A stretch of 64,000 nucleotides of DNA, taken from positions 2,170,001 to 2,234,000 of the forward strand of contig NEEC01000018.1 of the NCBI GenBank assembly GCA_002189035.1. The letters run 5' to 3'. This DNA comes from Utricularia gibba (taxonomy: Eukaryota > Plantae > Magnoliophyta). Under the pieces are notes generated by a model. It saw only the letters and a program-made list of their open reading frames with translations. It searched no databases and was not told where the DNA came from. The position numbers and the translations under genes are program-made. Numbering within the stretch: position 1 is the first letter of the stretch; each line of letters begins with the position of its first letter. Below, in pieces: positions 1,533 through 62,609 of this stretch.

Positions 1533-2779
1533 TTAGGATAAGATCCAATGTTCGCCGTGGACGCCCACTCGCAATCCATGAATCTTAGCAAATAGGTTAA
1601 CCGCTCTGTTCACACCATCCATAACAACATCGTGGCCAAAGAGGACACCACCAGGGCGCAATACCTGTTGTACAGACATTACATATGGTAACAATAACGT
1701 CATCCAACACCAGTCAGGCACTATAGAAACTTGTATATATACATATTAAACACATCCTATCATTTTATCCAGGGACTACTCTCCAGAAAAGATTCTAACA
1801 GCCGGGGTATCACCCTAACTGAGTCAATCTTTGGAACACTGGTTTGGATTTTGTTTTCTAATTTCGCATTTTCAGGAGATTTTTCTGAACATTAAATAGA
1901 AAAATATAATTCTTGCAAATGGTAGGTTGATTAGTAGGAGCAAAAAGTTTCATGGATTATATTTACCTTGTAGCCGTTGTTGATGTCATCCCAGGCGGAG
2001 TGGAAGTCGTGGGCGGCATCGATCTCAACCAGGTCACCGTAAATACCCCAGGCACAGAGAGCATCGAGGGCACTTGTTGAAGAGAAGGGTAGAAATATGA
2101 TGTTTTCGGTGGCATTGGCAAGAGCAACATTCATCATGTACTGTTGGAGAAGGATGCTGTCACCGTTGAGCATTTTAATGGCTGGCCCATTGCCAGTATC
2201 AGCAAGCAAAGGCCAACCACGGAAGTCGTCAACACAGATGATTTGGGTGCCGAGACCTAATTTATTTGTGAGTGCCGCCATGTGCGTTGCCGATGCCCCC
2301 AGAAACGACCCGACTTCGATTATGGTCTTGGGCATGACCTTTCTTATCAGGTGCTCGAACACTGGATTGTGTGAGCCCCATACAACTTTCCAATCACGGC
2401 GTAGGTGCGGCGCCAAGTGCGGCGGAGGGAAATTCTGCCAGGGTGATACCCCGGCAAACACCTTATCGATAATTTTTCGACGCTCGGTGCCCTTGGGGAC
2501 GGCGCTGCTACACTTGATGTAGCTGAAATCATTGTGATCATCAATGGTAGTAGTGACGGTTTTTTGAGGAGGATTGATATGGTAATTAGATATGTATCCC
2601 AAAGTAAAACCGGTAACGATGAGGATGACTAAAATAGCTGGCCAAGCAACTTTCCTGGCTTCCTCGTTCGACGGGGATCTGTTCGCAGGGCGAAGCGAAG
2701 GAAGCAGTTGATTTGGATCAATATCCTCTTTCATTTTTCCTTCTTCTCCGTATACTCTCGATAGACGAGAGAAGGCCAT
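1533..2779 (-). CDS. Membrane-anchored class I SAM-dependent methyltransferase (Methyltransf_24-like), MT1; exons 2779-1967 and 1664-1533
   Basis: Hydrophobic N-terminal segment AILVILIVTGFTLGYI. SAM motif IIEVGSFLGASA, plus ICVDDFRGW and EIDAAHDFHSAW. Donor AAG|GTAAAT at 1967/1966 and acceptor CAG|GTA at 1665/1664 join NGYK to VLRPGGVLFGHD...HWILS*. Confidence 0.88.
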
Positions 2780-8660: not shown

Positions 8661-10202
8661 CTAAGGAAACCCAGCCACGGACCAGTTCTTCGCGGAGGGT
8701 TCGTTTTTTGGTGAAGCAATATACCTCTTCCAGTCACTCAGGACGATCTTGAGGCCTCGTAGCTTTACCTGCATTCCAACGCGACAATTCGCATGCATGG
8801 TCACAACTGTATCAAGATCCTTGCTTGGCTCGCAGAAAGTGCTGATGTAGCTCGTATTGAAGAACCGCATCGTCATGTTGACCCGAGCTATGAATGGGCT
8901 GAATTTGATGCGGTTAAGCACATCCTGCTCGTTCACTCCAGGGAAGTAAACCTGAGCATGGTTCCAGAACTTAAAAAATTTTATAGTTCTGTTGCTGGAT
9001 TTCACGTAGAGGAATCCACAGTTGGGGCTGTTTCTCCTGTCTGTGGAGCCGAACTTGTTAGAGTCGCACGCGATCTGGAAATCACCATCCGGGTAGAAAT
9101 ATTGGAATGGATTGCGCAACCACATTATATCGACATCCTGAAATTTGAAGTTGGGTGAAACTTCTCTTAGCATGCGCTACAACACTCACAAAAGACAATG
9201 CAGTTGCAATGCTCTAAGAAATGCACGAGTGATGAAAAGCACCCAATGCCTTGTGCGATGCGCCGGGCGAATGTATGTGATTTACTTACCAGTTTTATCT
9301 GTCAAATCTCGAATTACATGCTTCTAATCAATTGAGGTAGTAAAAAAGGGTTCTTGCCATGGATGGCCAAGTGTTACCGTGAAGACGAAATCGTATCCCA
9401 ATTCAAGCACAGTTCCCAGAAGTTGAAGTCTTCTCCACATCATATAGAGGTAATCTGCGCTCATGAAAACCTTCTGACCGGACAAGTTAATGTCACTTTG
9501 TAGTGCATAGCAATGAAATCGTCCAGCCAGGCAACGAGAATATGCAATTTCATCAAACGCCACAAATACCATGTGGTTAATAAGCTTTTGAGTCTGATTT
9601 CCAATTCGAAAACTCTCGAGAAATAAATCGAGTGTTGAGTTGGGCTCCGTCCACGCTGCGTTTAAAATTGTTATAATCACTGTTTTCTTGTCCTCCATCA
9701 CCGCCTTCTCTAGTACCTTTTTGAGCTCCGCCTTCTCTTGAGTTTCCTGTTTCACAAAATATAGACAAACTAGCATTCAATTAAATTGGATATGGAATAA
9801 AAGTAACACAGATTTGAAGCTAAGAACTTCCCCAGAATGTGACCCCGCGGAATGACCATTTCATTCCCAATTCCCAAGTGTACTAGGAATGTTCCTCTTG
9901 TGATTTCGTTTGGAATCATAATAGATTGACTAGCCGATCACCTGGGAGTCTTTTGTGTGATAGCCTGATTCTGCTCCAGGACAAGATTCAGATGCGACGG
10001 AAGACGATTCCCGAAAGTACATCCTGAGATCACCATGGCCAAAGTGCCTTAGTGTGACAACAAGTATACTGATGACCACAAAAAGTATAACCATCGTCTC
10101 AACATCCCTCCCCACGACAAAAAATCTGCGCTTCTTCACAACACTCCGATTGTACTCCGAGTCGGGGGCTGAGCTGCTGCTCCCTTCCATCATGGAAGCC
10201 AT
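8661..10202 (-). CDS. GT77/Nucleotid_trans-like glycosyltransferase copy c; exons 10202-9942, 9746-9378, 9137-8661
   Basis: Same three-exon layout as copy b (exon 2 is 369 nt). Motifs KKRRFFVV-TM, TILNAAW, YDFVFT|DVDIMWLRNP, NCGFLY, NEQDVLN, TMHANC. Confidence 0.92.
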
Positions 10203-13740: not shown

Positions 13741-14360
13741 CAATTACTCCTGATCTCTTTTGCGAGCCCTTTCCGGGTGGGTGTTCTAGCTCCCTTCAGA
13801 CTTTCCATTGCTTGATAAATTCAAGAACTTCACCAAGTACTCAAATGACAGCTTATTCAAGAACTTCACCAAGAACTTCCCTTTCCGGGTGGGTATCTCA
13901 GAATTGTTGAGACAAAGCTCGTCAGGAAATTCAAGTATCTCTTCACCAAGACAACCTTATGTCTATATGCACGTTAATCAAGATTACCACGATCACGACA
14001 AACGTTTCTATTGTGAAGAAGGGCTGTTGTTTATCCAAGACGTGCCATGGCTGATAATGATGTCAAACCAGTACTTCTTCTCGATGCCACGCTTTGTTCA
14101 AGAATTGCAAAATCTTTTCCCCGACAAGGAGACCGTTTTTCACTAGCTGGGGCGGTACATGTTCCACCCCACAAATTCGGTATGGGGGCTTGTTAGAAGG
14201 TTTTATGATGGATATCTTGCTGAGACGGACCTCAAAGTAGGTGTCCAGATCCGAATTTATCACTACGAAATAATTTCCTTCCCGTTTGTCGCCGATCAGG
14301 TCCTTTCATGCACCATGAACGAGGGTATACTTTCACGTGTCTACTCGCAACAGCATGACT
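13741..14360 (+). pseudogene. Internal fragment of the GT37 fucosyltransferase (copy of about 20252-20830), truncated at both ends
   Basis: Near-identical DNA to FUT-A (caattactcc...cgtgtctac). Lacks N- and C-termini. Has stops, a 9-nt loss at aaccagtacttc-ttctcgatg and a templated insertion at about 13855-13900. Confidence 0.9.
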
Positions 14361-15679
14361 TCGTTGAATCGATAACCCTTCGAACAAGTCAGAAAATTAT
14401 ATTTAACTTTTACAAATATAATTTATGTTTTTTATATACTTTGACTTCAATCAAATCTTTAATTTCAACTAACCATACTTGGATTGGTGTCGGTTAAATC
14501 TAAAAAAAACTTCGATGATGATCCGTTGATGAAAATATTTTTTTTTGTATACTTTTAGTGTGTTTTTTCACCAACACAATAGAAATTGAATCCTAATAAT
14601 TTTGAGCATAAGGTGCACGAATTTAGAGTTCTAATGGATTAAAGATTTGATAATATTGTTGCATCAGACATCCAAATTTGTTAAAATACTACACACAAAT
14701 GTTTCTATACATCCATAAACATATTTTTTTCAATCGAATGAATGACAAATCTTTTAACACATGATGGATATTCATAAATAGAATTAATCAAAAAATTATA
14801 ATTTATGAGATATCATTGGATACAATTGCGATTAATCAATGTTTTTAAATGATTAAATTAATATGAATATATAACTAATCCATTCTATGATTTAAAAAAA
14901 TATAATTTATGACATCAAAGAGTAGTTCGACTGGAAAGTGGGTATTAGAACACATAATCCCACAACGAAAAAATAAAAAATGAAAAAATCAAATATATAT
15001 TAGAGATTGCAAATCATTTATAATTGATTGAAGTTAACTTTTTTTAATGTGATCTATCTTTGTTATGTAATTGAGATTCACACATGTTTCCATGATCAAT
15101 TGAATTCTTAATTTCAATACGAATTCAAGATGGTGAATATTGCGTAGAGACGTCAGCACAAAACAAATTGCGATACAGAATATCGTGCATACGATGACTG
15201 GTAGTTGATGTTTTATTGAAAGAGTTGGAAACTCGGTTGTCATTGGTTGCCGTTGGGAGTTCTGGTTTTTGAGGAATATGCAGAGGGCTTTGAAGCAACG
15301 CGTGGATGATAAAAGAGAGGGAGAGGGAGAGACATGAAGATAAATGTTTACATTGAAACAAACTCAAGTTTGAACCACACAATAATCTAACATTTTGAAA
15401 AGATGTCGAACGAAAAATTACTGATGGAAGTTAAGCCACCTTTGGTTGGGGTGTTTAGGTGGGTTTTAATATAGGTTTAGCAATAAACTCATATTTGATA
15501 CATGGGTTGCAAGTAGGTAAAAATATACTTATCTTGTCCCTATACATCCATCAACAACCTGTACTGATAGATTTACATAAATGGAAGGGGAGAGATCGGT
15601 TTATGTAGCATAACCGATTTCTTCCAATTTTGCCCTTCATCTGATATTAACACTTCTTTTTTAAAATAGATCTAGCAGA

Positions 15680-19142: not shown

Positions 19143-19735
19143 TTTGAGTTTCAAACTTGGACAATGGCCGACTTTTGAGAAGAGACATGTTGTGCAATTA
19201 ATTCATCTGTAATTAAATTTAATTTACTAAGTGTATTCATGCATATTTCTCCACCATTTTTTACTTGTTGTATAATATACTAGTTTTGTCTGTAAAATGA
19301 TAAAAATAAATTAGTTATAAGATGAGAAAGAAAAAAAAATGTTTATGTCACACACATGTAAATCACGAGAATTGGTAATGGTATTCCATATTAATTATAT
19401 ATAGGAGAAATGATGTATTTAAATATATAAACCTTATTAATTTTACATAAGATTTTTTTAGACGTAAAGTAAAACCGTAAAAATTAGATGTTCAAAATAA
19501 ATAATATTGTATTTTGTGTATGATGACATTTGGTATTAACATTGAATATCCTTTTAAGATTTAGGTTAGAATTTCAACGAGTAAACATGCATCATTTACT
19601 AGTTGAAGAGGAGGCTCGCCTTGATTTTGGAGGCTCAAACAGACAACAGCTAGGCGATTAATACAGCTTTTGAAGAGAAATATTTCGGCAGGCAGAGAAG
19701 GCGAGAAGTTTCAAGGCTGTCTCAACTTTCCAGCC

Positions 19736-21352
19736 ATGAAATCAAAACCCATACTCAAGGGTTTACGCACAAATTTTTCGCAGAAACTTCTGAAATTTGC
19801 AGGTGGCTTTCTTCTTCTGGTGATGGGTATATCGTTCTTGCTCACAGTGTCTGCAGTATTGAAAGACCATATCTTTAAGTATAAGCTTAGCAGGGGTGCC
19901 TACTTTCACAACCAGCTTGAAGAAGGTCTTCTGCCAAGTGGTTTTGATGAAAGTTCTTGTGCAAGTAGATACGATTCTCTGTTGCATCAACGAGAATCAC
20001 TGAAGAAGCCTTCGGCTTACCTCAAGTCGAAGTTACGTAGCTACGAAGCGCGACACCAGAGGTGCGCTCCGTACACTCTTCTGTACAATACAACTCTGGC
20101 GACCTTGGAAACGAAAGGTTCTTCAGTACGATCAGAGTGCAACTACATCATATGGTTTGCGGTACTCGGGTTAGGGAACAGAATGATAAGCCTTGCTTCT
20201 GCGTTCCTCTATGCTCTCCTCTCCGATCGGGTTCTCCTCATTCATCCCGAGGCAATTACTCCGGATCTCTTTTGCGAGCCCTTTCCGGGAGGGTCTTGGT
20301 GGCTCCCCTCGGACTTTCCATTGCTTGATAAATTCAAGAACTTCACCAAGTACTCAAATGACAGCTTTGGTGAATTGTTGAGACAAAGCTCGTCAGGAAA
20401 TTCAAGTACCTCTCCACTACGACAACCTTATGTCTATGTGCACGTTAATCAAGATTGTGGTGATCACGACAAACGCTTCTATTGTGAAGAAGGGCAGTTG
20501 TTTATCCAAGACGTGCCATGGTTGATAATGATGTCGAACCAGTACTTCGCCCCGCCCTTCTTCTCAATGCCACGCTTTGTTCAAGAACTGCAAAATCTCT
20601 TCCCCGACAAGGAGACTGTTTTTCACTTGCTGGGGCGGTACTTGTTCCACCCCACAAATGCGGTATGGGGGCTTGTAAGAAGGTTTTATGATGGATATCT
20701 TGCTGAGGCGGACCTCAAAGTAGGTGTCCAGATCCGAATTTATCACTACGACAAAATTTCCTTCCCGTTTGTCGCCGATCAGGTCCTTTCATGCACCATG
20801 AACGAGGGTATACTTTCACGTGTCTACCCGCAACAGCGTGAAAACTTGACTGAAACCATGACATCGACGACCAAGAAGAAGAAAATCGTCGTGCTAATGA
20901 CTTCGTTGAATCGACAACCCTTCGAACAAGTCAGAAAATTATACTTGGAGAATGCAACTGTGACGGGAGATACCATCACAATCCATCAACCAAGCTTCGA
21001 AGAGCATCAAAACACAGGGGAACTAAATCATGATAAGAAAGCATTGGCAGAAATGTACCTACTCAGCCTCACAGATAAATTGCTGACAAGTGAGAAGTCA
21101 ACTTTCGGGTATGTGGCTCAAGGTCTAGGCGCGTTGAAGCCATGGGTGATCTTCATGTGGAAGAATGAGACAGGCCATGGCCGCGAATGCTCCCGAGCCG
21201 TATCAATGGAACCTTGCATGCACATTCCTCCGAGGTTCGACTGTAAGACGAGACAAACAATTGGTAAAAATGTTAACAAACCCTTCATTAGAGATTGCCA
21301 GGATTGGAATGGAGGAATTCAATTAGTTGGCAACTATAATAATACGTCCTAA
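19736..21352 (+). CDS. GT37 alpha-1,2-fucosyltransferase (xyloglucan/AGP FUT family), FUT-A, single ORF of 538 aa from ATG 19736
   Basis: N-terminal TM (FAGGFLLLVMGISFLLTVSAVL). Family motifs DESSCASRY, HQRCAPYT, GLGNRM.SLASAFLYALLSDRVLL, LFCEPFP, VFHLLGRYLFHP, VGVQIR, STFGYVAQGLG, SMEPC.H. Confidence 0.95.
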   Translation: MKSKPILKGLRTNFSQKLLKFAGGFLLLVMGISFLLTVSAVLKDHIFKYKLSRGAYFHNQLEEGLLPSGFDESSCASRYDSLLHQRESLKKPSAYLKSKLRSYEARHQRCAPYTLLYNTTLATLETKGSSVRSECNYIIWFAVLGLGNRMISLASAFLYALLSDRVLLIHPEAITPDLFCEPFPGGSWWLPSDFPLLDKFKNFTKYSNDSFGELLRQSSSGNSSTSPLRQPYVYVHVNQDCGDHDKRFYCEEGQLFIQDVPWLIMMSNQYFAPPFFSMPRFVQELQNLFPDKETVFHLLGRYLFHPTNAVWGLVRRFYDGYLAEADLKVGVQIRIYHYDKISFPFVADQVLSCTMNEGILSRVYPQQRENLTETMTSTTKKKKIVVLMTSLNRQPFEQVRKLYLENATVTGDTITIHQPSFEEHQNTGELNHDKKALAEMYLLSLTDKLLTSEKSTFGYVAQGLGALKPWVIFMWKNETGHGRECSRAVSMEPCMHIPPRFDCKTRQTIGKNVNKPFIRDCQDWNGGIQLVGNYNNTS

Positions 21353-21629: not shown

Positions 21630-23239
21630 TCAGGGAATGTAGCTTTGATTGTCAAACAGCATTGTGCCTCCGGGTGAGTCTGGGCATTCTTTAATATGAG
21701 GCCCGATGACGCTTGTACCAGCTGCACGTCTCATCTTACAATAGTATTTTGGAGGTGTGTGGTAACAAGGTTCGATGGTTAGGATCCGATAGCACGGTCG
21801 GTCTCGCTCACTCTCGAGCTTCGACTTGAAGAGAATCCATGGCATCAGGCCGCTCAGACCTTGAGCAGCATAGCCGAATGTTGATGTGGCGCTTACAACC
21901 AACTGATCGGTCAAGGTGAGTAAGTATATTTCTGCCAGTGCCTTCTTGTTGTGATGGTGATTCCCTGAGTCTTGGCGCTCTTCGAAGCTTGGTTGATGGA
22001 TGGCAATGGCATCTCCGGTTATCGTTGCGTTTTCCCAATACAATCGTCTCACGTAATCGAAGTAGCTGTGGTACAGTGAAGTTATCAGCAACACGATTCT
22101 CTTCTTCTTCTTGGGAATTAGGGTTTTTGTGAAATTTTCTTGCTCCTGAGCTTCTGTATGCGGTATCAAACCCTCGTTCGTGATGCAAGAGACAACCTGA
22201 TCCAATATTTCCTCGGGTGAGATTTTGTCGTAATTGAAGGTTCGGATTTGGAGGCCTACTTTCACATCATACCCGGACAGATAAGATTCATAAAATCTTC
22301 TTACAAGCCCCAGACTACGTTGTTTGGATTCAACAGATACCCACCCAGTAAGTGAAAAACAGCTCCCTTCTCGGGAAAGAGATTCTCCAGTTCGTGCTGA
22401 AAGCTTGGCATTGTAAACAAAGCAGGAAGAAAATATTGATTTGCCATCACGATTAACCATGGAATATCTTCAACATACGATTGCTCTTCGTCGCAAAAGA
22501 AGCGTTTATCAAGATCATCAGCAAAATTGTTGAGGTACACGTATAGATAGGGAAGTGGCAACGAATCACTTGAGTTGAATGATAAACCGTTTCCCACCCG
22601 CTCCCCAAAACTATCATTCAAACCTTTTTTAAAGTGCAGCATTTCATAGTGTAAGGGAAAGTCAACAGGAAGCAGCCATGAACCTTCTGGGAAGGGTTCG
22701 CAGAAAAGACCAGCAACAGTGTCTTCAGGATGAATGAGCAAAACGCGATCCGTCAGCAAAGCATGTAGAAACGCTGAAGCAACGCTGATCATTCTGTTTG
22801 CCAGGCCGCCGTTCGAGAACCATATGCTATACTTACAAGCAGATCGAACTGCAGACGTGTTGGCCCTCAGGGCAGCCACGGTGGTGTTATAAAGGTTCGT
22901 GTATGGAGCGCATCGCTTGTGCCGTGCTTCGTATGCGCGTAGCTTCGACATGAGATACGGAGAAGGTTTCCTTAGTGTTGGGCGTTGAAGCAAGAGAGAA
23001 TCAAACCTGCTAAGGCAGGAACTCTCATCAAATCTACCTGGGGGAAGGTCTTCGTTGATCTGCCTGTAGAAATAACCTCCCCGGTCGAGCTTGTAATCGA
23101 TGAGATAATTTTTCAATACTATGGAGATGTTGAACAAGAAGGATAAGCTCATCCCTGCGAGAAGAAGACCCCCGATAAACTTCAACAGATTTTGCGACAA
23201 CCATGTCTGGAAATGCTTCCAATGTCGTCTTCTATCCAT
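21630..23239 (-). pseudogene. GT37 fucosyltransferase FUT-B, full length but with a single 1-nt frameshift at about 22308-22311 (pseudogene or consensus error)
   Basis: ORF 23239-22301 (TM, GGLANRM, LFCEPFP, VFHLLG.YLLNP) ends VWGL*. ORF 22460-21630 continues GLVRRFY...VGLQIR...STFGYAAQGL...EPC.H. TGGGGCTT here has 4 G; TGGGGGCTT in FUT-A has 5 G. Confidence 0.88.
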
Positions 23240-27325: not shown

Positions 27326-27329
<4 letters not shown>

Positions 27330-29948
27330 GGAAGGTGACAACGTATAGCGTTCTTCTTCAGAGCTCAGCTAGAGTTCTGATTTTCGGTTTTTTTTTTAGC
27401 ATCATAATAATTCTGGTCGACTTTCCTGTCTTTAAAGACGGGGAGAATTCGAAGGGGAAGCAAGCTCCTGTTCGTCCTCTTTATTCCGCAAACCCAAACA
27501 AACGAAAGGAGTTGCCAAAGCCTTGGCTTTCCAGCTTGAATTTATCTGCAGCCATTTTAAATACGACCTCCGAAACACATCATATGAAGACAACAAGAGA
27601 AGCTATTGTACTAGGCAGACAGCTCTGGGAAGAAATTGAGTTGATCCACGGTGAGGCTAGTAAAAGGTCCCATGCTAAGAGTGACTCGAAGCCTTGCAGG
27701 CATTCGATATCGGTTGCTAGGGATGAATTCGCGAAGAATGAGAATTTGCTAGTTTTGCCTTGTGGGCTCACTTTCGGCTCGGCTATAACAATCGTTGGAA
27801 CGCCGAACGGTTCACAGTTGGTGGTAGAATTGCAGGGAATAAAGATAATGGAAGAGGAGTACACACCGAGATTCCTGCATTTTAATCCAAGGTTGAAGGG
27901 CGATTGGAGTGGGAAGCCTGTTATTGAAATGAATACTTGTTACAGATTTCAATGGCGAACTCCACAACGTTGTGAAGGTTTGAGGTCCCAAGCAGATGAG
28001 GAGACTGGTCAGTGCGATATTTATCAAGTTTTGCGTTAAATTTACGCTTTCCATGTATTGTTTCCTATGTAAAAATCTAAAATTTATTTCACACCTTACT
28101 TTTGTTTCTAGTTACTTGAAACATCCTTTTTGTGTTAGAAAATTATGCTCACTTTTGAATAAATTGAGACTAAAAGGAACTCTGGAAGCAAATTTAGGCT
28201 GTCGGTTGGAAATTATCCATGAGAATAGCAATACTTATGCACCCATTTTGGCTTAATTTTCTGCAGTTGACGGAATGGTCAAGTGTGAGAAGTGGATACT
28301 CGATGAGGATTACAAGCTAGAGAAATCCAATGTTACACGGAAAGCAGCAAATGCATCAGTTGATTGGCCATTTCCATTTGCACAAGGCAAAGTATTCAGT
28401 CTCACTCTCACAGCGGGCTTGGAAGGTTATCACGTCAATGTGGATAGGGAGCACCTCGCCTCCTTTCCATACCCCATTGTGAGAACTACAATGTTTAATT
28501 TTTTTAAAATGATATTTCAGAGTACTAAATTTTCACTCATATCCACCAGGGGTTCAGTCTGGGAGATGCCACCGGATTGTCAATAACCGGGGATGTGGAG
28601 GTTCAATCGGTTCATTGCGCTTCACTGCCATCATCATACCCCACATTTTCCCCCATGAGTCATCTTGAATTTTCTGAAAGATGGAAGGCACCACCTCTTA
28701 ATGATACGCCAGTTGAACTTTTCATTGGTGTTATTTCTGCTGGAAGCCATTTTACTGAAAGGATGGCTATAAGAAAGTCTTGGATGCAGCATCACTTAAT
28801 CAAGTCAACCACAGTTGCTGCACGCTTTTTCGTTGCATTGGTGAGTTCGCAAGACTTCGTTTTTGTATTTTTATCATTCTGCACACTCGGAATTGAACCT
28901 TCGGTCATCACTTGCTCCAAAGGGGCCTATGAATGTCATAGCCACACAGGCTTTGTCAAAATATCCATGAACTTACGTGTGCCTCCATGTTGCATAGAAT
29001 GGAAGGAAAGAGATCAACATGGAAGTACTGAAGGAAGCCGAGTTTTTCCAAGACACTGTTATAGTACCACACGTGGACTTCTACAACCTCACTGCTTTGA
29101 AAACTGTTGCCATTTGCGATTACGGGGTCAGCAGTCCATATTTTACTACACACTGTTTTTCTTATTATTCTACAAATCCGCTTCCAACTAACTCAACAGT
29201 TGTTTTTTCAGGTAACAAGAATTCCATCAAAATATATTATGAAGTGTGATGATGACTCGTTTATAGGGGTAGGTGGTATTATTCAGGAACTGAGAAAATT
29301 TGAAAATAAGAGCAGCTTGTATATGGGGAATATGTTGTATAATAATATGCCAACGCGTAGTGGTAAATGGACTATGAGCTTCGAGGTACTCTCTCTCTCT
29401 CTCTCTCTAGCTTATTTGTGTGAAAAATGAGCCTCTTTCTTTTTTTAGTTTTACCGGTTTTGTACTTATGCCCTTCTACAGATGTGTGTTTTGTGCCTTT
29501 TTATTTTTTCTGAATGTACAATTGGCTTACTACTTTTTAGGAATGGCCCGACAAGCCATTTCTTCCCTACGCATGTGGGCCGGGTTATATTCTATCACCT
29601 GACATTGCAAAGTACATTGTTTCCGAATTTAATCATCACAGACTTCCGGTAAGCGTAGAAAAGTTTCCTTTCCTTCACAACTACAATCACCAGTTGGATC
29701 TCAGTGAGTTTCTTTTTTTTCTTTTTCTTTTGTTCCAGTTATGCTCATTGGAAGATGTTGCAACCGGAATATGGGTGTCCAGCTACAATACTACTGTGCC
29801 AGTTAAATACATCCACAACTCCTCGAAGTTCTGCACTAAAGAGTGCGCAGAGGGTTGCATAGTGTCTCATTACCAGACTCCGCGGCAGATGTTTTGCATA
29901 TGGGACAAGTTAACTCGTTTCGAACGCCCTGCTTGTTGCAATAAGTGA
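27326..29948 (+). CDS. GT31 beta-1,3-galactosyltransferase with galectin domain (hydroxyproline O-galactosyltransferase GALT2-6-like); exons 27326-28007, 28267-28478, 28550-28840, 28998-29126, 29212-29385, 29541-29648, 29739-29948
   Basis: TM near the N-terminus. LPCGLTFGS.IT.VGTP, LHFNPRLKGDWSGKPVIEMNTCYR.QW, DGMVKCEKW, WPFPF, LFIGVISAG.HF.ERMA.RKSWMQ, KYIMKCDDD, GPGY, EDV. All seven exons join in frame at GT-AG sites. Confidence 0.93.
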
Positions 29949-36686: not shown

Positions 36687-38299
36687 TTAAGGAAACCCAT
36701 CCACGGACCAGTTCCTCGCAGAGGGGTCGGTTCTGGGTGACGCCATATACCGCTTCCATTCACTCAGGACAACCTTGAGCCCTCGTAGCTTAACATCCAG
36801 GCCAATGCGACAATTCGCATGCATCGTCACAACTGTGTCAAGATCCTTGCTTGGCTCGCAGAAAGTGCTGATGTAGCTCGTATTGAAGAACCGCATCGTC
36901 ATGTTGACCCGATCTATGAATGGGCTGAATTTGACGCGGTTAAGCACATCCTGCTCGTTCGCTCCAGGGTAGTAATCCTGAGCATGGTTCCAGAACTTAA
37001 AAAATTTTATAGTCCTGTTATTGGATTTGACGTAGAAGAATCCACAGTTGAGGTTGCTTCTCCTGTCTGTGGAGCCGAACTGGTTAGAGTCGCACGCGAT
37101 CTGGAAGTCACCTTCTGGGTAGAAATATTGGAATGGATTGCGTAACCACATTATATCGACATCCTGAAATTTGAAGTGGGGTGAAACTTCTCTTAGCATG
37201 CGCTACAAAACTCACATAAGACAATGCAGTTGAAATGCTCTAAGAAATACACAGGTGATGAAAAGGGGAGAATGCACCCAATGCCTTCTGCGATGCCCTG
37301 GAAGAACGTGCGTTATGAGATTTACTTACCAGTTTCATCTTTCAAGACCTCGAATTACATTTTTCTAATCAATGGAGGTAGTAAAAACGAGTTCTTGCCA
37401 TTGATGGCCGAGTGTTACCGTGAGGACGAAATCGTATCCCAATTCAAGCACAGTTCCCAGAAGTTGAAGCCTTCTCCACATCATATAGAGGTAATCTGCG
37501 CTCATGAAAACCTTCTGTGCGGACAAGTTAATGTCACTTTGTAGCGCATAGCAATGAAATCGTGCATCCAGGCAACGTGAATACGCAATTTCATCAAACG
37601 TCACAAATACCAAGTGGTTAACAAGCCTTTGAGTCTCATTTCCAATTCGAAAACTCTCGAGAAATAAATCGAGTGTTGAGTTGGGCTCCGTCCACGCTGC
37701 GTTTAAGGTTGTTATGATCACTGTTTTCTTGTCCTCCATCACCGCCTTCTCTAGTACCTTTTTGAGCTCCGCCTTCTCTTGAGTTTCCTGTGTCATAGAT
37801 AAACTAGCATTCTATTATATCAGACATGGAATAAAAAACAACCAAGAACACACATTTGACGCTAAGAATTTCCCCAGGATGTGACCAGGCGGAATCACCA
37901 TTTCACTCCCAATTCCCAAGTGTATTTTGTGTGTCCTGATTGAAGTTTTAAGTGTTTCTTATGATATGGTTGGATGAAATCTTCATATCTTCTGAATACT
38001 GAAGATAATGTTCCTCTTGTGATTTCGCTTGGAATCACCTGGGAGTCTCTTATCCGATCACCTCCTTCTGCTCCAGGACAAGATTCAGATGCGACGGAAG
38101 ACGATTCCCGAAAGTACATCATGAGATCTTCTTGGCCAAAGTGCCTAACTGTGACAACAAGGATACTGATGACCACAAAAAGTATAACCACCGTCTCAAC
38201 GTCCCTCCACACAACAAAAAATCTGCGCTTCTTCACATCACTCCGATAGTACTCTGAGTCGGGGACTGAGCTGCTGCTCCCTTCCACCAAGGAAGCCAT
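36687..38299 (-). CDS. GT77/Nucleotid_trans-like glycosyltransferase copy d; exons 38299-38039, 37787-37419, 37163-36687
   Basis: Same exon lengths as copy c (261/369/477 nt) and closely similar sequence, including introns. DVDIMW DxD motif and HANC. Confidence 0.92.
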
Positions 38300-39112: not shown

Positions 39113-40090
39113 TTAAACCAAGATCCAGTGCTCTTCATCGACCTTGACTTGGAAGCCATGGATCTTAGCGAAGAGCTCGACGGCTCTTTTGACGCCATCC
39201 AAAGCGATATCGTGGCCAAACAGAACACCCCCGGGGCGAAGAAGCTTGAACCCATTGTTTATGTCAATCCAGGCGGAGTGGAAGTCGTGAGCCGCATCGA
39301 TCTCCACCAGATCGGCGTAGATGCCCCACGTGCAAAGCCCGTCGAGTCCATTCGTAGTGGAGAAGGGCAGGAATATGATGTTTTCAGTAGCATTGGCGGT
39401 GTCCACATTGAGCATGAATTGGTGTAGAAGGATGCTGTCGCCGTTGATCATTTTTATTGGTGGGTGTAAGGGCCAGCTCCGAAAGTCGTCCACGCAGATG
39501 ATCAGGGTGTCGAGGCCTAGTTTCCGGACGATCCTCGCCATGTGGGTCGCCGAGGCGCCGAGGAAAGTTCCGGCTTCGATGATGACCTTGGGCTTCACCT
39601 GACGTGAAAAAAAAAAAAAAAGCTCGCTTCACGTTGAAGAGTTTACGGCAATTTAACTAGCCTTTTTTTTTTACCTGGGCAATCAGGCGTTCGAAAACTT
39701 GGTTGTTTGAGCCCATTCCACCCCATATCGTCCAGTCACGGCGGAGATGCGGAGCCGTGTTCGGCGGAGGGAAGTTTTCCCAAGGCGATGGCCCCTGGAA
39801 AACCTTGTCGAGAATGACTTTTCGCTCGGTGCCGCTGGCGACGGGGTCAGCGCATTTGATGTAGGAGAAATCTTGGTGATCTTCGAGTTTAGATACCTGT
39901 GGGAAGTAAATCAACACAAGATTTGATCAAAATGATTGAACCTCATAACTGATTTTACCGGTGGAGGATTCGGAGATATGGTTTGGTTATGAGAGGAGTA
40001 TCCCAGCAGAAAAGCTGTGGCAAAGACGATGACCAATGCAGCAAGTTTACCAAGGCTCTTGTAAGGATGTGAATCATCCTTAGTCCCCAT
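39113..40090 (-). CDS. Membrane-anchored class I SAM methyltransferase MT2; exons 40090-39959, 39896-39675, 39598-39113 (279 aa)
   Basis: TM LAALVIVFATAFLLGY. IIEAGTFLGASA, ICVDDFRSW, EIDAAHDFHSAW, LRPGGVLFGHD. Phase-0 GT-AG introns. Confidence 0.9.
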
Positions 40091-41813: not shown

Positions 41814-42793
41814 CTACACCAAGATCCAGTGCTCTTCATCGACCTTGACTTGGAAGCCATGGATCTTAGCGAAGAGCTCGACAGCCCTTTTGACGCCATC
41901 CAAAGCGATATCGTGCCCAAAGAGGACGCCCCCGGGGCGGAGGAGTTTGTACCCATTGTTTATGTCATTCCAGGCGGAGTGGAAGTCGTGTGCCGCATCG
42001 ATCTCCACCAGATCGGCGTAGATACCCCACGTGCATAGCCCGTCGAGGCCGTTCGTGGTGGAGAAGGGCAGGAATATGATGTTTTCAGTAGCATTGGCGG
42101 TGTCCACATTGAGCATGAATTGGTGTAGAAGGATGCTGTCGCCGTTGATCATTTTTATTGGTGGGTGTAAGGGCCAGCTCCGAAAGTCGTCCACGCAGAT
42201 GATCAGGGTGTCGAGGCCTAGTTTCCGGACGATCCTCGCCATGTGGGTCGCCGAGGCGCCGAGGAAAGTTCCGGCTTCGATGATGACCTTGGGCTTCACC
42301 TGACGTGAAAAAAAAAAAAAAAGCTCGCTTCACGTTGAAGAGTTTACGGCAATTTAACTAGCCTTTTTTTTTTACCTGGGCAATCAGGCGTTCGAAAACT
42401 TGGTTGTTTGAGCCCATTCCACCCCATATCGTCCAGTCACGGCGGAGATGCGGAGCCGTGTTCGGCGGAGGGAAGTTTTCCCAAGGCGATGGCCCCTGGA
42501 AAACCTTGTCGAGAATGACTTTTCGCTCGGTGCCGCTGGCGACGGGGTCAGCGCATTTGATGTAGGAGAAATCTTGGTGATCTTCGAGTTTAGATACCTG
42601 TAGAAAGTTGAAGTGAATCAACACAAGATTTGATCAAGAGGATCAACACAAGATTTATCACCGGTGGAGGATTCGGAGATATGGTTTGGTTATGGGAGGA
42701 GTATCCCAGCAGATAAGCTGTGGCGAAGAGGATGACCGATGCAGCTAGTTTACCAAGGCTCTTGTAAGGGTGTGAATCATCCTTAGTCCCCAT
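41814..42793 (-). CDS. Membrane-anchored class I SAM methyltransferase MT3; exons 42793-42662, 42597-42376, 42299-41814
   Basis: Tandem paralog of MT2 with the same exon lengths (132/222/486 nt) and motifs. Confidence 0.9.
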
Positions 42794-46328: not shown

Positions 46329-48065
46329 TCATAGTCTGGATCTGCGAATGCATTTTATGGGATTAAAATGTGGGAGTCTCCGTCCGGCGGTTATGGCTCC
46401 GGGTCCCGTCTCCCAGTCCTCGACGTTTCTGGGGAAAGAATGGCCGAACAGCAGCTGGCCGAGGACGCCGGTGGTGATCATCTTCTCCGGTGGGACGGAG
46501 AAAGAGATGTAGTGCTGCTCCCCCTGAATGTACCCGGCACCATGGCTGTCGTAGCACTCGATGAGTGAGTCATCTGTAGAGTCGACGGCTGGCCCATTGA
46601 AGCTCGAGCTTGGATTTGCTGCTGCTCTTCTTAGGTTGCACGAGTGAGGAGAGCTACTGGCGCCCATCCCAATCTTCTCAACTTTCTGCTGCTGTATCCT
46701 TTTGGAGTAAACAGTTGCAGCTTTGGTAAGTAGTTCGGTTGCAGCAGCCTTGTATTCTTCAGGGTAGCGCCGGAAATGCCCTGGTCATGTTTCCGATACA
46801 GAAAGAGGGAGGATTGTTTTAAAGAGGCTGCCGGAGTCAGAATCAATATGCCAGGCTCATCAAAACTATGCAGATTGCATACCGGCATGAGGTGAGCATT
46901 TCCATTTAACAAGAGTAACATCGCCGCCGAGTTGTCGAAGCCGTGATGCGAAGTTGTAGATGACTTGAAACGGGGCAAGATCATCATCCTCAGAGCAGAA
47001 TATGAGATAGGGAGCCTTCATTGTCTGAAACGGAATCAGTAACATTAGAGACTGATAAGAAGAGGTCACACATAAGCAGCTTGATCGGTATGCTCTGAGA
47101 CTCACAATTGTGGAGTAGAGAGTTTGCCAATACTCAGCACGCTGTAATTCAAAGTGGCTGAGAAAGAGTCTGTCTAGACATGAAGATATTCCTTCTGCAA
47201 TCCATGAAGCTAGACGCGGAGGCCGTGACATTCCAAGGGTGCTTGGATGAAGAACGAAACGAGTGCCCAAGTCACTGACAAAGTCCACCGGAGTAGAATC
47301 GAAAACATAACCGGAAACACAGTCTCGAACTAGTCGATAGTCATCCTTCAAATGAAAAATGAGAATGTTCATCCTCATACACAGAAACCAGCCACTCATA
47401 CAAGGTGCAAGGAGAGAAAGGATAGGTTACCAAAAAGGCTTGCCCTTCACACTTTCCCTGGATTATCTGAAAACAAGTGACGGGGAGTGAGCTTGTTGCA
47501 AGAATTGAGCACCAACATCATGCAGAAAGGTGTGAAAACACTTGCCGCGTTGTTGAACAGGAGTTATACCTGATGAACCTTGTACATGCATGCTTTAGGA
47601 CCACCCGAAAAAGATGAAAATACAACGGGGCGTGGCCTGAGTTTCAGTTCCTTTTCATGAATACAATCAGGTCATATTCTAACATATGCCACAAACGTTA
47701 AATATCTCCATTCTTCGAGAACTCCTGAAGTGTGTAAAAGTTTGGAGAGACTTACTTGAACAAGCTGATTGATGATTCCAAGTGCCAAGATTGCTGCTTT
47801 CTCTGGAAAAAACCTGCAAATCAATCAAATACAGGCATCATCATATGAAGGGGGAAGCATATAGGATACGAGGAAAAGAGAAAGCTTACAAATTGAGAAA
47901 TTGGGAATGACAGACTAGTGAATTCCAGCCAAGAGATGAGTAGAAATCAACATAATTCTTTAAATGCTTATCCTGACTGGATAACCAAGCAAACAGCACA
48001 ACGATTCCTTCAACTCTCCCCTTCTCCCTTCTCCCCCAGTAATACCTTCCGCCCAATCCCCACAT
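46329..48065 (-). CDS. DUF829 / TMEM53-like alpha-beta hydrolase-fold protein (multi-exon)
   Basis: Exon 1 MWGLGGRYYWGRRE...VVLFAWLSSQDKHLKNYV..YSSLGWNSLVCHS. Later FSGGPKACMYKV, FDSTPVDFVSDLG, PYLIFCSEDDDLAP and GHFRRYPEEY. Ends CIRRSRL*. Confidence 0.88.
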
Positions 48066-49572: not shown

Positions 49573-51811
49573 TCAGTAGGCTTCGAAGTCCCTTATAGAG
49601 AGCTGCCTCATATTTGGTAGATTCTCTGAGCGCCTGAGTTCCAAGGTGAGTGAGACATCTCCGGCCACTGGATTCCCGTCGCAGCCATCCGTCTTCTTCG
49701 TTCCGTAGCACCGTGAAATCTCGGCGATCGCCTCCGCAGAGGAGGAGGAAATGGCGCCACTCTCAGAGAGGTCATTCTCTGCTGCATTGTTGATATTTGG
49801 TTGAGGAGCTGCTGGATTCGCTGCTTCTTGTTGTTGTGCTTCATGCAGCTCCTGCTGGTACATTTCTTCCACCATGGGCTTCCATAGGCGAACCCTAGCA
49901 TTTATGAACCAATTTGATACCTGGGACAGGGAGATTTATGGCCTTTCAGTGGTGGGTGCGTATTAATTCTTCTGAGTTTCAGCTCATTCACCATTCAATG
50001 AATTTTACTCAACTTTGTAACCTTAGAAACTTCAATCCTCAATCAAATTTTGTGATCTATAAACGTAACAGCTACTTGAATTATTGCAAGTACGTGATCA
50101 TTGTACTACAGTACCTGGTTTTTGGATAAGCCTGTCTGCCTGGAGAGCAAATGCTTGTCCGCTTCACTCGGGTACCTATTTCATCATATGGATTAACAAA
50201 CAGACCAAGATAAGAAGCAGAATAAAGCAGTGAAAAGGCGTACGGGTGGAGGAAGTGCTCGAAGAGCCAAGATCGGAGAATGTTGACGCTGCGTTCCGGT
50301 AGGCCGCGCTCCGGCCGCCATGACTCGGGGTCAATGACCGCCATCTGCTGGAGGGATTTCTGCTGCCGGTATCTCTGATCCAGCATTTTAAGCCGAGGGG
50401 TTTCACCTTTAGTCAACCCTCGGCTGCCGGCGACATCTTTATCGCCTAGGAGTTGGCAGGCTGATTTCAGCTCCCCGGCAATGGCGTCCTTCATGCACCG
50501 GAAGTGCCGCGACATCGCCTTCTGGGCCAGAGCCGTATACGGCGCTGCAGCTCCACGGCCGACCATGGAGTCGAACCAATTCACCAATGCTTGCATTTGT
50601 TCACAGTATCTCATGTACCTTTCTTCCACCTTTTCAAACCCTCAAACGGCTTAGGACAATACAAAAGTAGCAGCAAATCCTAAACGAAAACCCTAAAAAG
50701 GATTGAAAATATTCCATTTTGGGCATCACTGTTTTTAATGCATTTTTTGCAACTTCAATCCCTTTTGGAACTATAGTTAATGGCTGACTGGAGTTTCAAA
50801 ACACAACCCAGGACCATAGTTTGGTGGAACATTCATGTCAGCAGGAAGTTCCCTAAGGACATTATTCCTGATTCTTAAACAATTTCCTCTTTGTATGACA
50901 ACTATAAAAAGTAGAACGATCCAGCACGTTATAACTGAATGAAAAGAAATGCAAACCTCATCAAGCATGGAGAGAAGCTTCATTTTTCTCCTCTGGTAAT
51001 CAGCTCTTTCAGAAGGCGATAGCGAGTTCCGATCTTTGGACTGCGAAGCCTTGGAGGAGCCACCGGAGTTAGGGTTTCTTTCATGGCTTCTAAGCTTGAG
51101 GTTCTTGAACTGCCCCCTCCCAACGCAACAGAATTCTTGAAGCAGCTCTTGGGAAGGTCTCAAGTAGCGTGAGTTTCTCAAGAAGTTTGCCAGAGAGTAG
51201 TTTGATAGTCCAATGCCTTGGCTACGGAAGAGCAACTCCGTCTGTTCGACGTTCATTTTGTGTAGCTTATTGGCCTCGGCGTTCCTCAATGACGGAGATA
51301 GTGATAAGAAGTTCCCGGTCCTCAGGCTGCCATCGCCGCCGGGATCCGCCCAGTTGAACAGATTTTGTGGGTGAGTGCCGGCTTGAACTAGTTGATGAAG
51401 ATAGGGAGAAGTTGAAGATGAAGATGAAGAAGAATCTTTGATCTGATTGTTCATAAAATGAAGCTGCCAGAGAGAGAGTGAGTGAAAAAAATGTAACAAT
51501 CGCATGAAACCTCATGATGACATGTTATAAAAAAGAGAAAAAAAATTACTGCAAGCTCGCTGCTGTTTTACTGCGACTCTCACCTCTTCTGCAGCAGCGC
51601 CATTTACTACTCCCACTGACAAGTGCTGTTTTTCCGGCCACCAGAAAGTTGGCTGGATCTGATTCTCCTCCACCATACTCGGCCCTTCCCCAGCCGTCAC
51701 GAACTCCGCAAGCATCTCTCCGGTCACATAATCCGGGTTTCTGGTGAACTCCCCGGCCGCCTGCATATCAAGTTCCTGACCTTTCATGATCCACTCTCCC
51801 TGTCTATGCAT
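49573..51811 (-). CDS. BEL1-like homeodomain (TALE/BLH) transcription factor; exons about 51811-51584, 51463-50957, 50629-50244, 50175-50115, 49920-49573
   Basis: SKY-like [25 protein letters not shown] domain KLLSMLDE|VEERY..YCEQMQ...[13 protein letters not shown]. Homeodomain [28 protein letters not shown]...[22 protein letters not shown]-terminal VSLTLELR. Confidence 0.95.
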
Positions 51812-61600: not shown

Positions 61601-62609
61601 ATCGCCATACATTAAGCAATATTACTAAGAAAAAACCACATAGGCCATGCAACAACATGAATTTTTCATACCATTCATGCGCCATATCTTGACTTGGCGG
61701 TCGTCTGCCCCTGAAACAATCAGAGGAAGCGTAGTATGGAAAGAAGCCCAGTTTACACCTCGATCATGGCCTTCCAAAACATACTTCACAACAGCATCAA
61801 TCCCGCCAAATAAATCAGTACTCATCTGAGGCAGCCGCAGACCATCATCAGCTGGAGATACGGACTTCTTTTTCAAGGCACCAATGTCCCACACACGAAT
61901 GGTCTGATCCAGAGAAGCTGAAACTACCAAGTCTTCTTTGGGATGGAATGAAGCACACATGACATAATGATTATGCCCAGTTAGTACTGACAGGCAAGTT
62001 CGCGACTGCCAGTTCCATAACCTTATCGTCTGATCATCACTCGCACTAACTATCCAAGGATACTCGTGATGAAACTGTGTCGTCCGTATATAATCAAGAT
62101 GGCCCAGAAGAGTAAATAGACAACGGTGCAATTTGTAATTCCATACCTTGATTTTGTAATCGTCACCTAGATATACAAACAACGATATGCATCAAGTTGA
62201 ACTAGTAAACAAACCTGGGAAACTGCATCCGATTCACCAAAGAAATGAACTTCCTACGGATCCAAAAAAGAATCAAGACCCGCAAACACGACCGCAAACG
62301 AGAACTACTAAATCCATGAACAATACAAGAAAAACTAAACAGATCAAGAAATCTATTCCAAAGATATTTGATTGAAGCAGGTGCATTGCAAACGATCCAT
62401 ACCTCCAGAAACAAAAAGAGGCTGCGATTTATGGAAGTTAATGCCTCTAACCGGACCCTCATGCTCTTCAAACCGATCAATGAGCGTACCCATGCGATAA
62501 TCCCAGAGCTGTATCACCCCGCTGTGAAGACTCGCCAGGATCCATGGTCTCTTAGGATGGAAACTCAGCCCTTCACTCTATTGCTCTTCGTCTCAAACTT
62601 GGTCAACAT
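58620..62609 (-). CDS. COPA: Coatomer subunit alpha; exons 62609-62403, 62166-61672, 61557-58620, with an apparent 1-nt frameshift near 59053-59064
   Basis: Starts [18 protein letters not shown], then WD40 repeats ([28 protein letters not shown]) and ends ...CPYC...[10 protein letters not shown]. After RRELKG the conserved [23 protein letters not shown] lies in another frame. Confidence 0.96.

Follow-up and report, generated by a model that had tools for sequence, protein, structure and literature searches.

Three intact AT1G01180-family genes of Utricularia gibba encode membrane-anchored Methyltransf_24 proteins that may act as lumenal glycan O-methyltransferases

The stretch of Utricularia gibba DNA analysed here (the window: 64,000 nucleotides of contig NEEC01000018.1, positions 2,170,001 to 2,234,000 of the forward strand, GenBank assembly GCA_002189035.1) carries three methyltransferase genes, MT1, MT2 and MT3, together with four PF03407 genes, GT77a to GT77d (Table 1). 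MT1, MT2 and MT3 are confirmed as intact genes, and all five of their introns have GT-AG ends. MT2 and MT3 are recent copies (dS 0.11) under purifying selection (dN/dS 0.07), and for MT1 against MT3, where dS is saturated, the ratio is about 0.06. Searches took the spliced models one exon at a time, the exons being kept separate throughout.

Table 1. Positions of the methyltransferase and GT77 features, numbered from the first letter of the window.
Feature	Start	End	Strand	Content
GT77a	141	596	plus	last exon, PF03407 E 3.7e-30; 5′ part at or outside the left window edge
MT1 exon 2	1533	1664	minus	43 codons (1664-1536) and stop (1535-1533)
MT1 intron	1665	1966	minus	302 nt, GT-AG, phase 0
MT1 exon 1	1967	2779	minus	271 codons: cytosolic tail, anchor 45-63, N-terminal cap, most of Methyltransf_24
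GT77b	6653	7702	plus	two ORF pieces, PF03407
GT77c	8661	9776	minus	two ORF pieces, PF03407; first exon unmapped
GT77d	36687	38323	minus	three ORF pieces including N-terminal anchor exon
MT2 exon 3	39113	39598	minus	161 codons (39598-39116) and stop; entire Rossmann-type SAM domain
MT2 exon 2	39675	39896	minus	74 codons: N-terminal cap, invariant Cys, SP..FPPP motif
MT2 exon 1	39959	40090	minus	44 codons: short tail and anchor 12-30
MT3 exon 3	41814	42299	minus	161 codons (42299-41817) and stop; SAM domain
MT3 exon 2	42376	42597	minus	74 codons; protein identical to MT2 exon 2
MT3 exon 1	42662	42793	minus	44 codons: tail and anchor

The first exon of MT1, which matches M569_03595 of Genlisea aurea at 58% identity (E 7e-85), ends at ...NNGYK, and the domain begun there continues in exon 2. 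The intervening intron has a G+C content of 34%, against 50% in exon 1, and is placed immediately 5′ of the coding sequence for LRPGG. Exon 2 encodes LRPGG...GHD together with a C-terminal helix and hairpin, and shares 72% identity with the corresponding stretch of MT3. A transposon origin for the intron was considered and rejected, as the search for terminal inverted repeats, for target duplications and for further copies in the window found none.

Among the GT77 genes, GT77a and GT77b are 78% identical, and GT77c and GT77d (dS 0.11-0.17) are recent duplicates. GT77a-d are assigned to PF03407 only, under generic names, and the four genes may be closer to the At4g15970/At1g28695 group than to RGXT. 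An earlier note on this DNA had remarked on the repeated position of the methyltransferase genes beside GT77 genes, and the adjacency is physically real: GT77a and MT1 stand tail to tail, with 937 bp between the end of GT77a (596) and the MT1 stop, and 790 bp downstream of the MT2 stop comes the start of GT77d (~38323). Within 42 kb of MT1-3 are four PF03407 genes, two to three GT37 genes (PF03254) and one galectin-domain gene. The region is gene-dense, so that any neighbour lies about 1 kb away.

The description of MT1-3 as Methyltransf_24-like proteins with a class I SAM domain is borne out by profile searches, in which each of the three genes exceeded the gathering cut-off of PF13578 (Methyltransf_24; 26.3 bits), with 28.3 bits in MT1 exon 1 (E 3.5e-6), 50 bits in MT2 exon 3 (E 6.1e-13) and 52.5 bits in MT3 exon 3 (E 9.9e-14). 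The score for MT1 is lower because the last 43 residues sit in exon 2, which was searched separately. The motifs named in that description (E-x-G-x-F-x-G-A-S, DAAHD and LRPGG...GHD) are present in MT1-3, and the E-x-G-x-x-x-G-x-S and C-V-D-D elements of the class I SAM fold are conserved in the family. That the proteins lack features of the DUF579 (GXM/AGM) family, first judged by eye, agrees with the Pfam search, where no MT exon matched DUF579, Methyltransf_29 or Methyltransf_3 (PF01596) at E <= 1. The MT proteins share the fold of the family-3 O-methyltransferases but fall outside that family, with no PF01596 match and with D-A-A-H-D and H-D replacing D-A-D-K and D-N. Similarity to the CmcI/rhamnosyl O-methyltransferase family is a weak local match (E 5e-4 to 3e-3; CmcI 2BR3, E ~0.1) covering the SAM-binding loop and strand 2, with scores below the cut-offs for both PF04989 RMNT_CmcI (18-20.3 bits vs 23.2) and the NF045824 rhamnosyl O-methyltransferase model (15.4-17 bits vs 400).

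The hydrophobic anchor spans residues 45-63 in MT1 (mean Kyte-Doolittle 2.0) and residues 12-30 in MT2 and MT3 (2.0 and 1.55), with Lys/Arg on its N-terminal side in each protein. Across 181 full-length relatives the most hydrophobic 19-residue window begins before residue 70 in 92%, and the mean number of Lys/Arg per 12 flanking residues is 3.0 on the N-terminal side of the anchor against 0.63 on the C-terminal side. This is a type II signal anchor with a positive-inside pattern, and the short N-terminus, single transmembrane segment and Golgi glycosyltransferase-like topology described in the earlier note are upheld by it; by the charge pattern, the catalytic domain would be lumenal. At least 147 of 162 family members retain an N-x-S/T sequon at the NAT site, with a variable middle residue (A, Q, E, F, H, V, K, L or S), and exactly three cysteines follow the anchor in 161 of the 181 relatives. 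Retention of the sequon and the presence of three cysteines in the catalytic domain are consistent with a lumenal location. The stem described beyond the anchor is in part a linker; residues ~71-115, however, are modelled as well structured in a full-length relative (pLDDT 85-98), and residues ~78-106 carry conserved positions (Cys78, and S100/P101 and F105/P106 of the SP...FP motif), so that this segment belongs to the catalytic domain.

Relatives of MT1-3 numbered 110 in one search and 492 in another, nearly all of them plant proteins of ~300 aa with PF13578, and the residues that are at least 93% conserved across the family are nearly all kept in MT1-3. The alignment of MT1-3 with these relatives is collinear and places them in the AT1G01180 orthogroup, and in a tree of 61 rows MT1, MT2 and MT3 form a single clade (SH-aLRT 89) within core Lamiales (100). 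By this phylogeny, MT1-3 are lineage-specific paralogues within one land-plant AT1G01180 orthogroup, a low-copy group that follows the species tree through the sampled ferns, monocots and eudicots. Members of the orthogroup have the architecture, length and motifs of MT1-3 at 45-67% identity, and MT1-3 are nested in its core-Lamiales branch. They differ from it in copy number (three here, one or two in most genomes sampled), in an altered KGWGS motif and a replaced Tyr after GHD, and in gained introns, of which MT1 has one and MT2/MT3 have two, whereas nine relatives with a gene span equal to coding length are intronless. The gene neighbourhood of MT1-3 is also unlike that of AT1G01180 orthologues. 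Brassicaceae members lie in a neighbourhood of the At1g01160-At1g01190 type (SSXT, DUF1138, P450), and gene order around the family differs among Brassicaceae, Sesamum, Cucumis, Genlisea, Andrographis, Zostera and the window. Synteny is no defining feature of this orthogroup over such distances. In the papers searched we found no function for any member of the AT1G01180 group.

The full-length fold discussed here is that of a model of a 58%-identical relative (P0001, pLDDT 84.9) rather than of an MT protein, and MT3 exon 3 was modelled directly (pLDDT 91.8, pTM 0.87), giving seven strands in Rossmann order. The top solved match of both models is MeT1 of Mycobacterium hassiacum (6G7D/6G80), which was recovered by Foldseek at E 1.9e-9 and by VIA at Z 17.7 for the P0001 model; 6G7D aligned with 155 of the 161 residues of the MT3 exon-3 model at Z 16.7. 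The family profile aligns with MeT1 over 144 positions (E 1.1e-5) with D-x-x-H and H-D in common. The substrates of MeT1 are 3-O-methylated oligomannosides of methylmannose polysaccharide (PMC9883506), so the best structural match is an enzyme that acts on oligosaccharides. Nevertheless, MeT1 matches at only 14-19% identity and is a soluble, cytoplasmic bacterial enzyme that has neither an anchor nor the plant N-terminal cap. It methylates an anomeric 1-OH, a reaction for which we know of no clear equivalent in plants. Three sugar O-methyltransferases, MycF, SpnH and NovP, are within the top structural tier, in which sugar, catechol, tRNA-hydroxyuridine and CCoAOMT-like methyltransferases tie within one Z unit. 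Comparison with characterised sugar O-methyltransferases by HMM and structure, which the earlier note had advised, was therefore favourable in that MeT1 is the nearest solved relative by profile and fold, but the match is tied with those to non-sugar enzymes. The TylF-type enzymes MycF, NovP, SpnH and CalS11 have a metal-dependent class I fold (Z 14-17.6) and methylate deoxysugar hydroxyls; they differ from MT1-3 in being soluble bacterial proteins of 12-20% identity that act on glycosylated small molecules, and PF05711 is not matched.

The explanation we favour, with roughly even confidence, is that the AT1G01180 paralogues MT1-3 act as single-pass type II lumenal glycan O-methyltransferases. 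The short N-terminus would be cytosolic and the Methyltransf_24 domain with its N-terminal cap would lie in the secretory lumen, most likely that of the Golgi, where Golgi SAM transporters would deliver SAM and the methyl group would be moved to a hydroxyl of a glycan, either a polysaccharide or a glycoprotein. The putative active site comprises the invariant Asp of (E/V)-x-D-A-x-H-D, the His three residues on, and the His-Asp that follows LRPGG. Equivalent positions in COMT, CCoAOMT and TylF-type enzymes coordinate a divalent cation and position the acceptor hydroxyl, and the MT enzymes may likewise be metal-dependent. The other known plant methyltransferases of type II topology (DUF579 GXM/AGM and the QUA2 group) act on polysaccharides in the Golgi. 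DUF579 and QUA2/Methyltransf_29 enzymes have the type II topology and presumed lumenal use of SAM proposed here for MT1-3, although they are unrelated or distant, with no match at E <= 1. Methylation of a sugar in the Golgi is plausible as a reasonable but unproven hypothesis, given MeT1 as the nearest solved relative by profile and fold, the sequon and the three cysteines, and this part of the earlier proposal stands.

The link to GT77 is not supported. It held that each MT methylates a sugar added by the adjacent GT77, making the window a glycan-decoration cluster, which we consider quite improbable. The PF03407, GT37 and galectin-domain genes within 42 kb of the MT genes do fit such a cluster, as does the continued residence of MT1 in one cluster with MT2/3 after an old split (dS saturated). 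However, in 10 other species, 11 orthologous places, two Genlisea contigs among them, showed no GT77 within ~10 kb of the MT orthologue; called genes were checked at all 11 places, and tblastn with seven GT77 pieces covered all but one Genlisea contig. Tandem arrays of the family also form alone, as in Zostera, where three MT-family copies stand in tandem with no GT77, and a gene-dense region supplies close neighbours of any kind. Nor does the PF03407 assignment of GT77a-d specify a sugar. Because MT1-3 are one lineage-specific clade, GT77d is a recent copy of GT77c, and no GT77 was seen near the orthologues sampled elsewhere, the two adjacencies go back to one local duplication history and are not independent observations. 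The adjacency itself is not upheld as evidence for methylation of a GT77-added sugar, and a gene-cluster argument for the MT substrate should not be relied on. Less probable again is that one or more of the MT copies are inactive relics, as would be the case for MT1 if the 302-nt insert were left unspliced and the protein truncated before LRPGG...GHD. The insert is indeed absent from MT2, MT3 and the nine relatives of coding-length span, but it is an AT-rich, phase 0, GT-AG intron with no transposon hallmarks, MT1 exon 2 retains every conserved family residue, and dN/dS between MT1 and MT3 is as low as given above.

An N-terminal anchor joined to the same fold does not itself call for a glycan, as mammalian membrane-bound COMT illustrates, and MT1-3 could by analogy act on either face of an endomembrane and methylate a catechol, a phenolic or another small hydroxyl compound. 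We regard this as unlikely. It draws on COMT, SafC, PFOMT and CCoAOMT-like enzymes, which match the models as well as the sugar enzymes do (Z 15-17), and on the strongest PDB sequence-profile matches, which are small-molecule family-3 O-methyltransferases (E 4e-7); the fold specifies chemistry and not substrate, and structure cannot tell sugar from catechol or other hydroxyl acceptors. Plant papers also group PF13578 matches with CCoAOMT-type enzymes (PMC11528125, PMC4631826). COMT, CCoAOMT and PFOMT share with the MT family the fold, SAM motif I and the metal-ligand positions after strands 4 and 5, but the family has H-D for D-N, and in HMMER alignments the Lys of the CCoAOMT D-A-D-K falls opposite a family Phe, with a conserved family His two residues earlier. 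The lack of a PF01596 match at E <= 1 also argues against a small-molecule enzyme, as does the indication of a lumenal domain in the conserved sequon, three cysteines and positive-inside pattern. Plant COMT/CCoAOMT-type enzymes are soluble and cytosolic. A low-copy orthogroup that follows the species tree from ferns to eudicots would, in addition, be unusual for specialised metabolism. Somewhat less likely still is a lumenal methyltransferase for a non-glycan macromolecule or lipid, such as a secretory protein side chain or a lipid head group. The topology evidence serves this alternative as well as it serves a glycan enzyme, and the class I fold is substrate-agnostic, with tRNA and protein methyltransferases among the matches; yet the active-site motifs are those of hydroxyl O-methyltransferases, and the papers searched yielded no precedent for an enzyme of this kind in the secretory pathway of plants.

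One possible though doubtful identity for the AT1G01180 family, MT1-3 included, is the missing Golgi O-methyltransferase of RG-II that forms 2-O-methyl-fucose and/or 2-O-methyl-xylose. RG-II is essential for growth and highly conserved in structure, and to our knowledge no other sugar methyl ether conserved across vascular plants lacks a known enzyme. The range of the family agrees with the RG-II reading, with sampled relatives in ferns, monocots and eudicots, and its low copy number, strong conservation, lumenal signals and fold agree as well. Plant cell-wall reviews of 2021 (bioRxiv 10.1101/2021.07.06.451061) and 2025 (PMC12168206) still named no enzyme for RG-II methylation. The family is a concrete low-copy candidate of suitable topology and chemistry, which would make RG-II methylation directly testable in Arabidopsis; the window itself serves as little more than a pointer to the family, and what counts is the family-level evidence.

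When the Brassica orthologue of AT1G01180 served as query, the best 120 matches listed included a single Brassicaceae group, and at1g01180 is apparently the sole close Arabidopsis member among the best matches listed. Arabidopsis At4g01240, which we take to be annotated as a SAM methyltransferase and to lie two loci from RGXT4 (At4g01220), finds no support as a family member in those best 120 matches, and the papers that name it give no domain. In viral proteins, PF13578 domains of the shape seen here are fused to GT4, GT2 or GT-A glycosyltransferases, which counts in favour of a glycan substrate.

MT1, the only gene between 1533 and 2779, lies on the minus strand, and its paralogues MT2 and MT3 lie farther along the window (Table), which is plant nuclear DNA of high gene density whose proteins have their closest relatives in Lamiales, foremost Genlisea aurea. 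In profile searches run one exon at a time, PF13578 (Methyltransf_24) scored above the Pfam gathering cut-off in all three genes (E 3.5e-6 for MT1 exon 1 and about 1e-13 for exon 3 of MT2 and of MT3), in agreement with the family named in the earlier note, and the motifs cited there are found in the MT sequences. The single N-terminal anchor that it described corresponds to hydrophobic segments at residues 45-63 of MT1 and 12-30 of MT2 and MT3, with Lys/Arg on the N-terminal side. PF04989 (CmcI/rhamnosyl O-methyltransferase) matched below threshold, and DUF579, Methyltransf_29 and Methyltransf_3 gave no Pfam match at E <= 1, consistent with the stated lack of DUF579 (GXM) features.

Table. Coordinates of MT genes and other features in the window
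Feature	Position	Strand	Remarks
MT1 exon 1	2779-1967	minus	271 codons
MT1 intron	1966-1665	minus	302 nt, GT-AG, phase 0
MT1 exon 2	1664-1536	minus	43 codons, then stop
MT2	40090-39113	minus	three exons: 44, 74, 161 codons
MT2 introns	39599-39674, 39897-39958	minus	GT-AG, 62-76 nt
MT3	42793-41814	minus	three exons: 44, 74, 161 codons
MT3 introns	42300-42375, 42598-42661	minus	GT-AG, 62-76 nt
Short FUT-like ORF fragments	13808-14497	plus	repeat parts of first GT37 gene
First GT37 gene (PF03254, xyloglucan-fucosyltransferase family)	19670-21352	plus	tail to tail with next
Second GT37 gene (PF03254)	21630-23239	minus	two overlapping ORFs (intron or frameshift)
ORF with N-terminal anchor and galactoside-binding lectin domain	27326-29191	plus	PF00337, E 2.9e-11
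DUF829 gene	46866-47399	minus	
BEL1-type POX-domain gene	50081-51505	minus	
Coatomer alpha subunit gene	58994-62182	minus	COPI_C, E 2.7e-91

Relatives of MT1-3 (110 in one search, 492 in another) are nearly all plant proteins of about 300 residues with PF13578, named in their sources only as 'SAM-dependent methyltransferases superfamily protein' or 'like AT1G01180'. In Brassicaceae, three members are flanked by SSXT/DUF1138 genes on one side and a P450 gene on the other, which we take to be the neighbourhood of At1g01180 itself. A 61-row tree branches in agreement with species relationships (ferns, monocots, early eudicots, rosids, asterids) and places MT1-3 as a single clade (SH-aLRT 89) within core Lamiales (100), beside Genlisea sequences, so that they represent lineage-specific paralogues within a single orthogroup, conserved and low in copy number. 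The literature searched gives no function for AT1G01180, and MT1-3 are new additions to a Pfam family already known and to a plant orthogroup that is likewise known but uncharacterised. The AT1G01180 family is prone to local duplication: three of its Methyltransf_24 genes stand in tandem in Zostera marina (LFYR01001429.1, 1836-10864), and three Ulmus minor members share one contig, as do two from Andrographis.

Among 181 full-length relatives, 92% have an N-terminal hydrophobic segment, Lys/Arg residues are five times as numerous on its N-side as on its C-side, and 161 have exactly three cysteines past the anchor; an N-x-S/T sequon at the NAT site of MT1-3 recurs in at least 147 of 162 relatives, its middle residue freely variable. 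Anchor position, charge bias, sequon and cysteines together favour an N-in, C-lumen orientation in which the catalytic domain would be glycosylated. This is the arrangement of known plant Golgi polysaccharide methyltransferases. In the full-length model, of the Genlisea relative P0001 (58% identical to MT1, pLDDT 84.9), a membrane helix leads through a short, variable linker to a conserved N-terminal cap that is well ordered (residues about 71-115) and then to a Rossmann core of seven strands; MT3 exon 3, the window's own sequence, was modelled with pLDDT 91.8 and pTM 0.87. For both, the top solved match is the methyltransferase MeT1 of Mycobacterium hassiacum (Foldseek E 1.9e-9; VIA Z 17.7 against P0001, and 16.7 against MT3 with 155/161 residues aligned, rmsd 2.4), which acts on oligomannosides of methylmannose polysaccharide (PMC9883506). 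Over 144 positions aligned with the family profile, MeT1 shares Asp-x-x-His after strand 4 and His-Asp after strand 5, residues that are invariant or nearly so even in the most distant aligned relatives. From the predicted fold, the reaction would be O-methylation of a hydroxyl group, assisted by a metal.

The reading we favour, given about an even chance, is that MT1-3 work in the lumen of the secretory pathway as metal-dependent O-methyltransferases of glycans. Structure comparison lends plausibility to the earlier proposal of a sugar substrate in that the top match acts on an oligosaccharide, but it is not selective: within about one Z unit lie not only the sugar O-methyltransferases MycF, SpnH and NovP but also TrmR, COMT and CCoAOMT-like enzymes, so that the fold speaks to the chemistry rather than the substrate. 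COMT and CCoAOMT-like structural matches would suit a membrane-anchored small-molecule O-methyltransferase, which the missing Methyltransf_3 match argues against and which we consider unlikely; a lumenal enzyme on another macromolecule or a lipid is less likely again. Inactive copies are very improbable, since low dN/dS marks all three as maintained genes: MT2 and MT3 are 98-99% identical as proteins (dS 0.11, dN/dS 0.07), and MT1 differs from MT3 at about 28% of domain residues with dS saturated and dN/dS about 0.06. Among predicted structures of the same shape are viral proteins that join PF13578 to GT4, GT2 or GT-A glycosyltransferase domains, and these offer circumstantial, family-level support for work on glycans. 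Glycan methylation is a reasonable idea on circumstantial evidence, and the family's function bears on the open question of RG-II O-methylation, for which reviews report no identified methyltransferase (PMC12168206; bioRxiv 10.1101/2021.07.06.451061); that it supplies the RG-II 2-O-methyl ethers is a tentative suggestion, itself unlikely.

Coupling to neighbouring GT77 enzymes, the specific reading of the earlier note, is improbable. The adjacency is physically real (937 bp separate the end of GT77a from the stop codon of MT1, and 790 bp lie between MT2 and the GT77d start downstream of it), and the same 42 kb hold, besides the MT genes, four PF03407 genes (GT77a-d), a galectin-domain gene and two or three GT37 genes. 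However, the two adjacencies are not independent, because the MT genes form one local clade and GT77c and GT77d arose by a recent duplication (dS 0.11-0.17), as old as that of MT2 and MT3. Nor did the pattern recur at eleven loci sampled from ten species (two Brassica species, Cochlearia, Sesamum, Cucumis, Rehmannia, Impatiens, Andrographis, Zostera and two Genlisea contigs), where no called PF03407 gene lay within about 10 kb of an MT orthologue; tblastn with the window's GT77 pieces found no match at any of these loci but one Genlisea contig, to which the search did not extend, and the Zostera tandem array is without any GT77. The window-specific adjacency argument for MT function does not hold. 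GT77a-d may be closer to the At4g15970/At1g28695 group than to RGXT. Between GT77c and GT77d (8661-9776; 36687-37796) dN/dS is fairly high, about 0.37 against 0.07 for the equally old MT2/MT3, which indicates either relaxed constraint on the GT77 copies or their diversification.

Intron number (one in MT1, two in MT2 and MT3) and position differ between the paralogues, whereas gene span equals exact coding length in nine relatives from other plants (two Brassica species, Cochlearia, Sesamum, Cucumis, Impatiens, Genlisea, Andrographis, Zostera); this looks as if two paralogue lines within a single lineage had each gained introns independently. The MT1 intron is intron-like in composition, and no transposon hallmarks were found in it. 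After G-H-D-Y (columns about 407-441 of the orthogroup alignment A1), core Lamiales have 2-3 residues before G-V versus about 6 elsewhere, among displayed rows that there do not include MT1-3; by length, MT1 exon 2 and MT3 exon 3 agree with the shorter form. The short segment is consistent with the strongly supported Lamiales branch. The FUT-like fragments near 13.8-14.5 kb are probably a decayed third GT37 copy. The ORF after the galectin-domain ORF had no Pfam match when searched alone, and the GT31 identity assumed earlier was not confirmed. Right of the cluster the neighbours are ordinary housekeeping genes.
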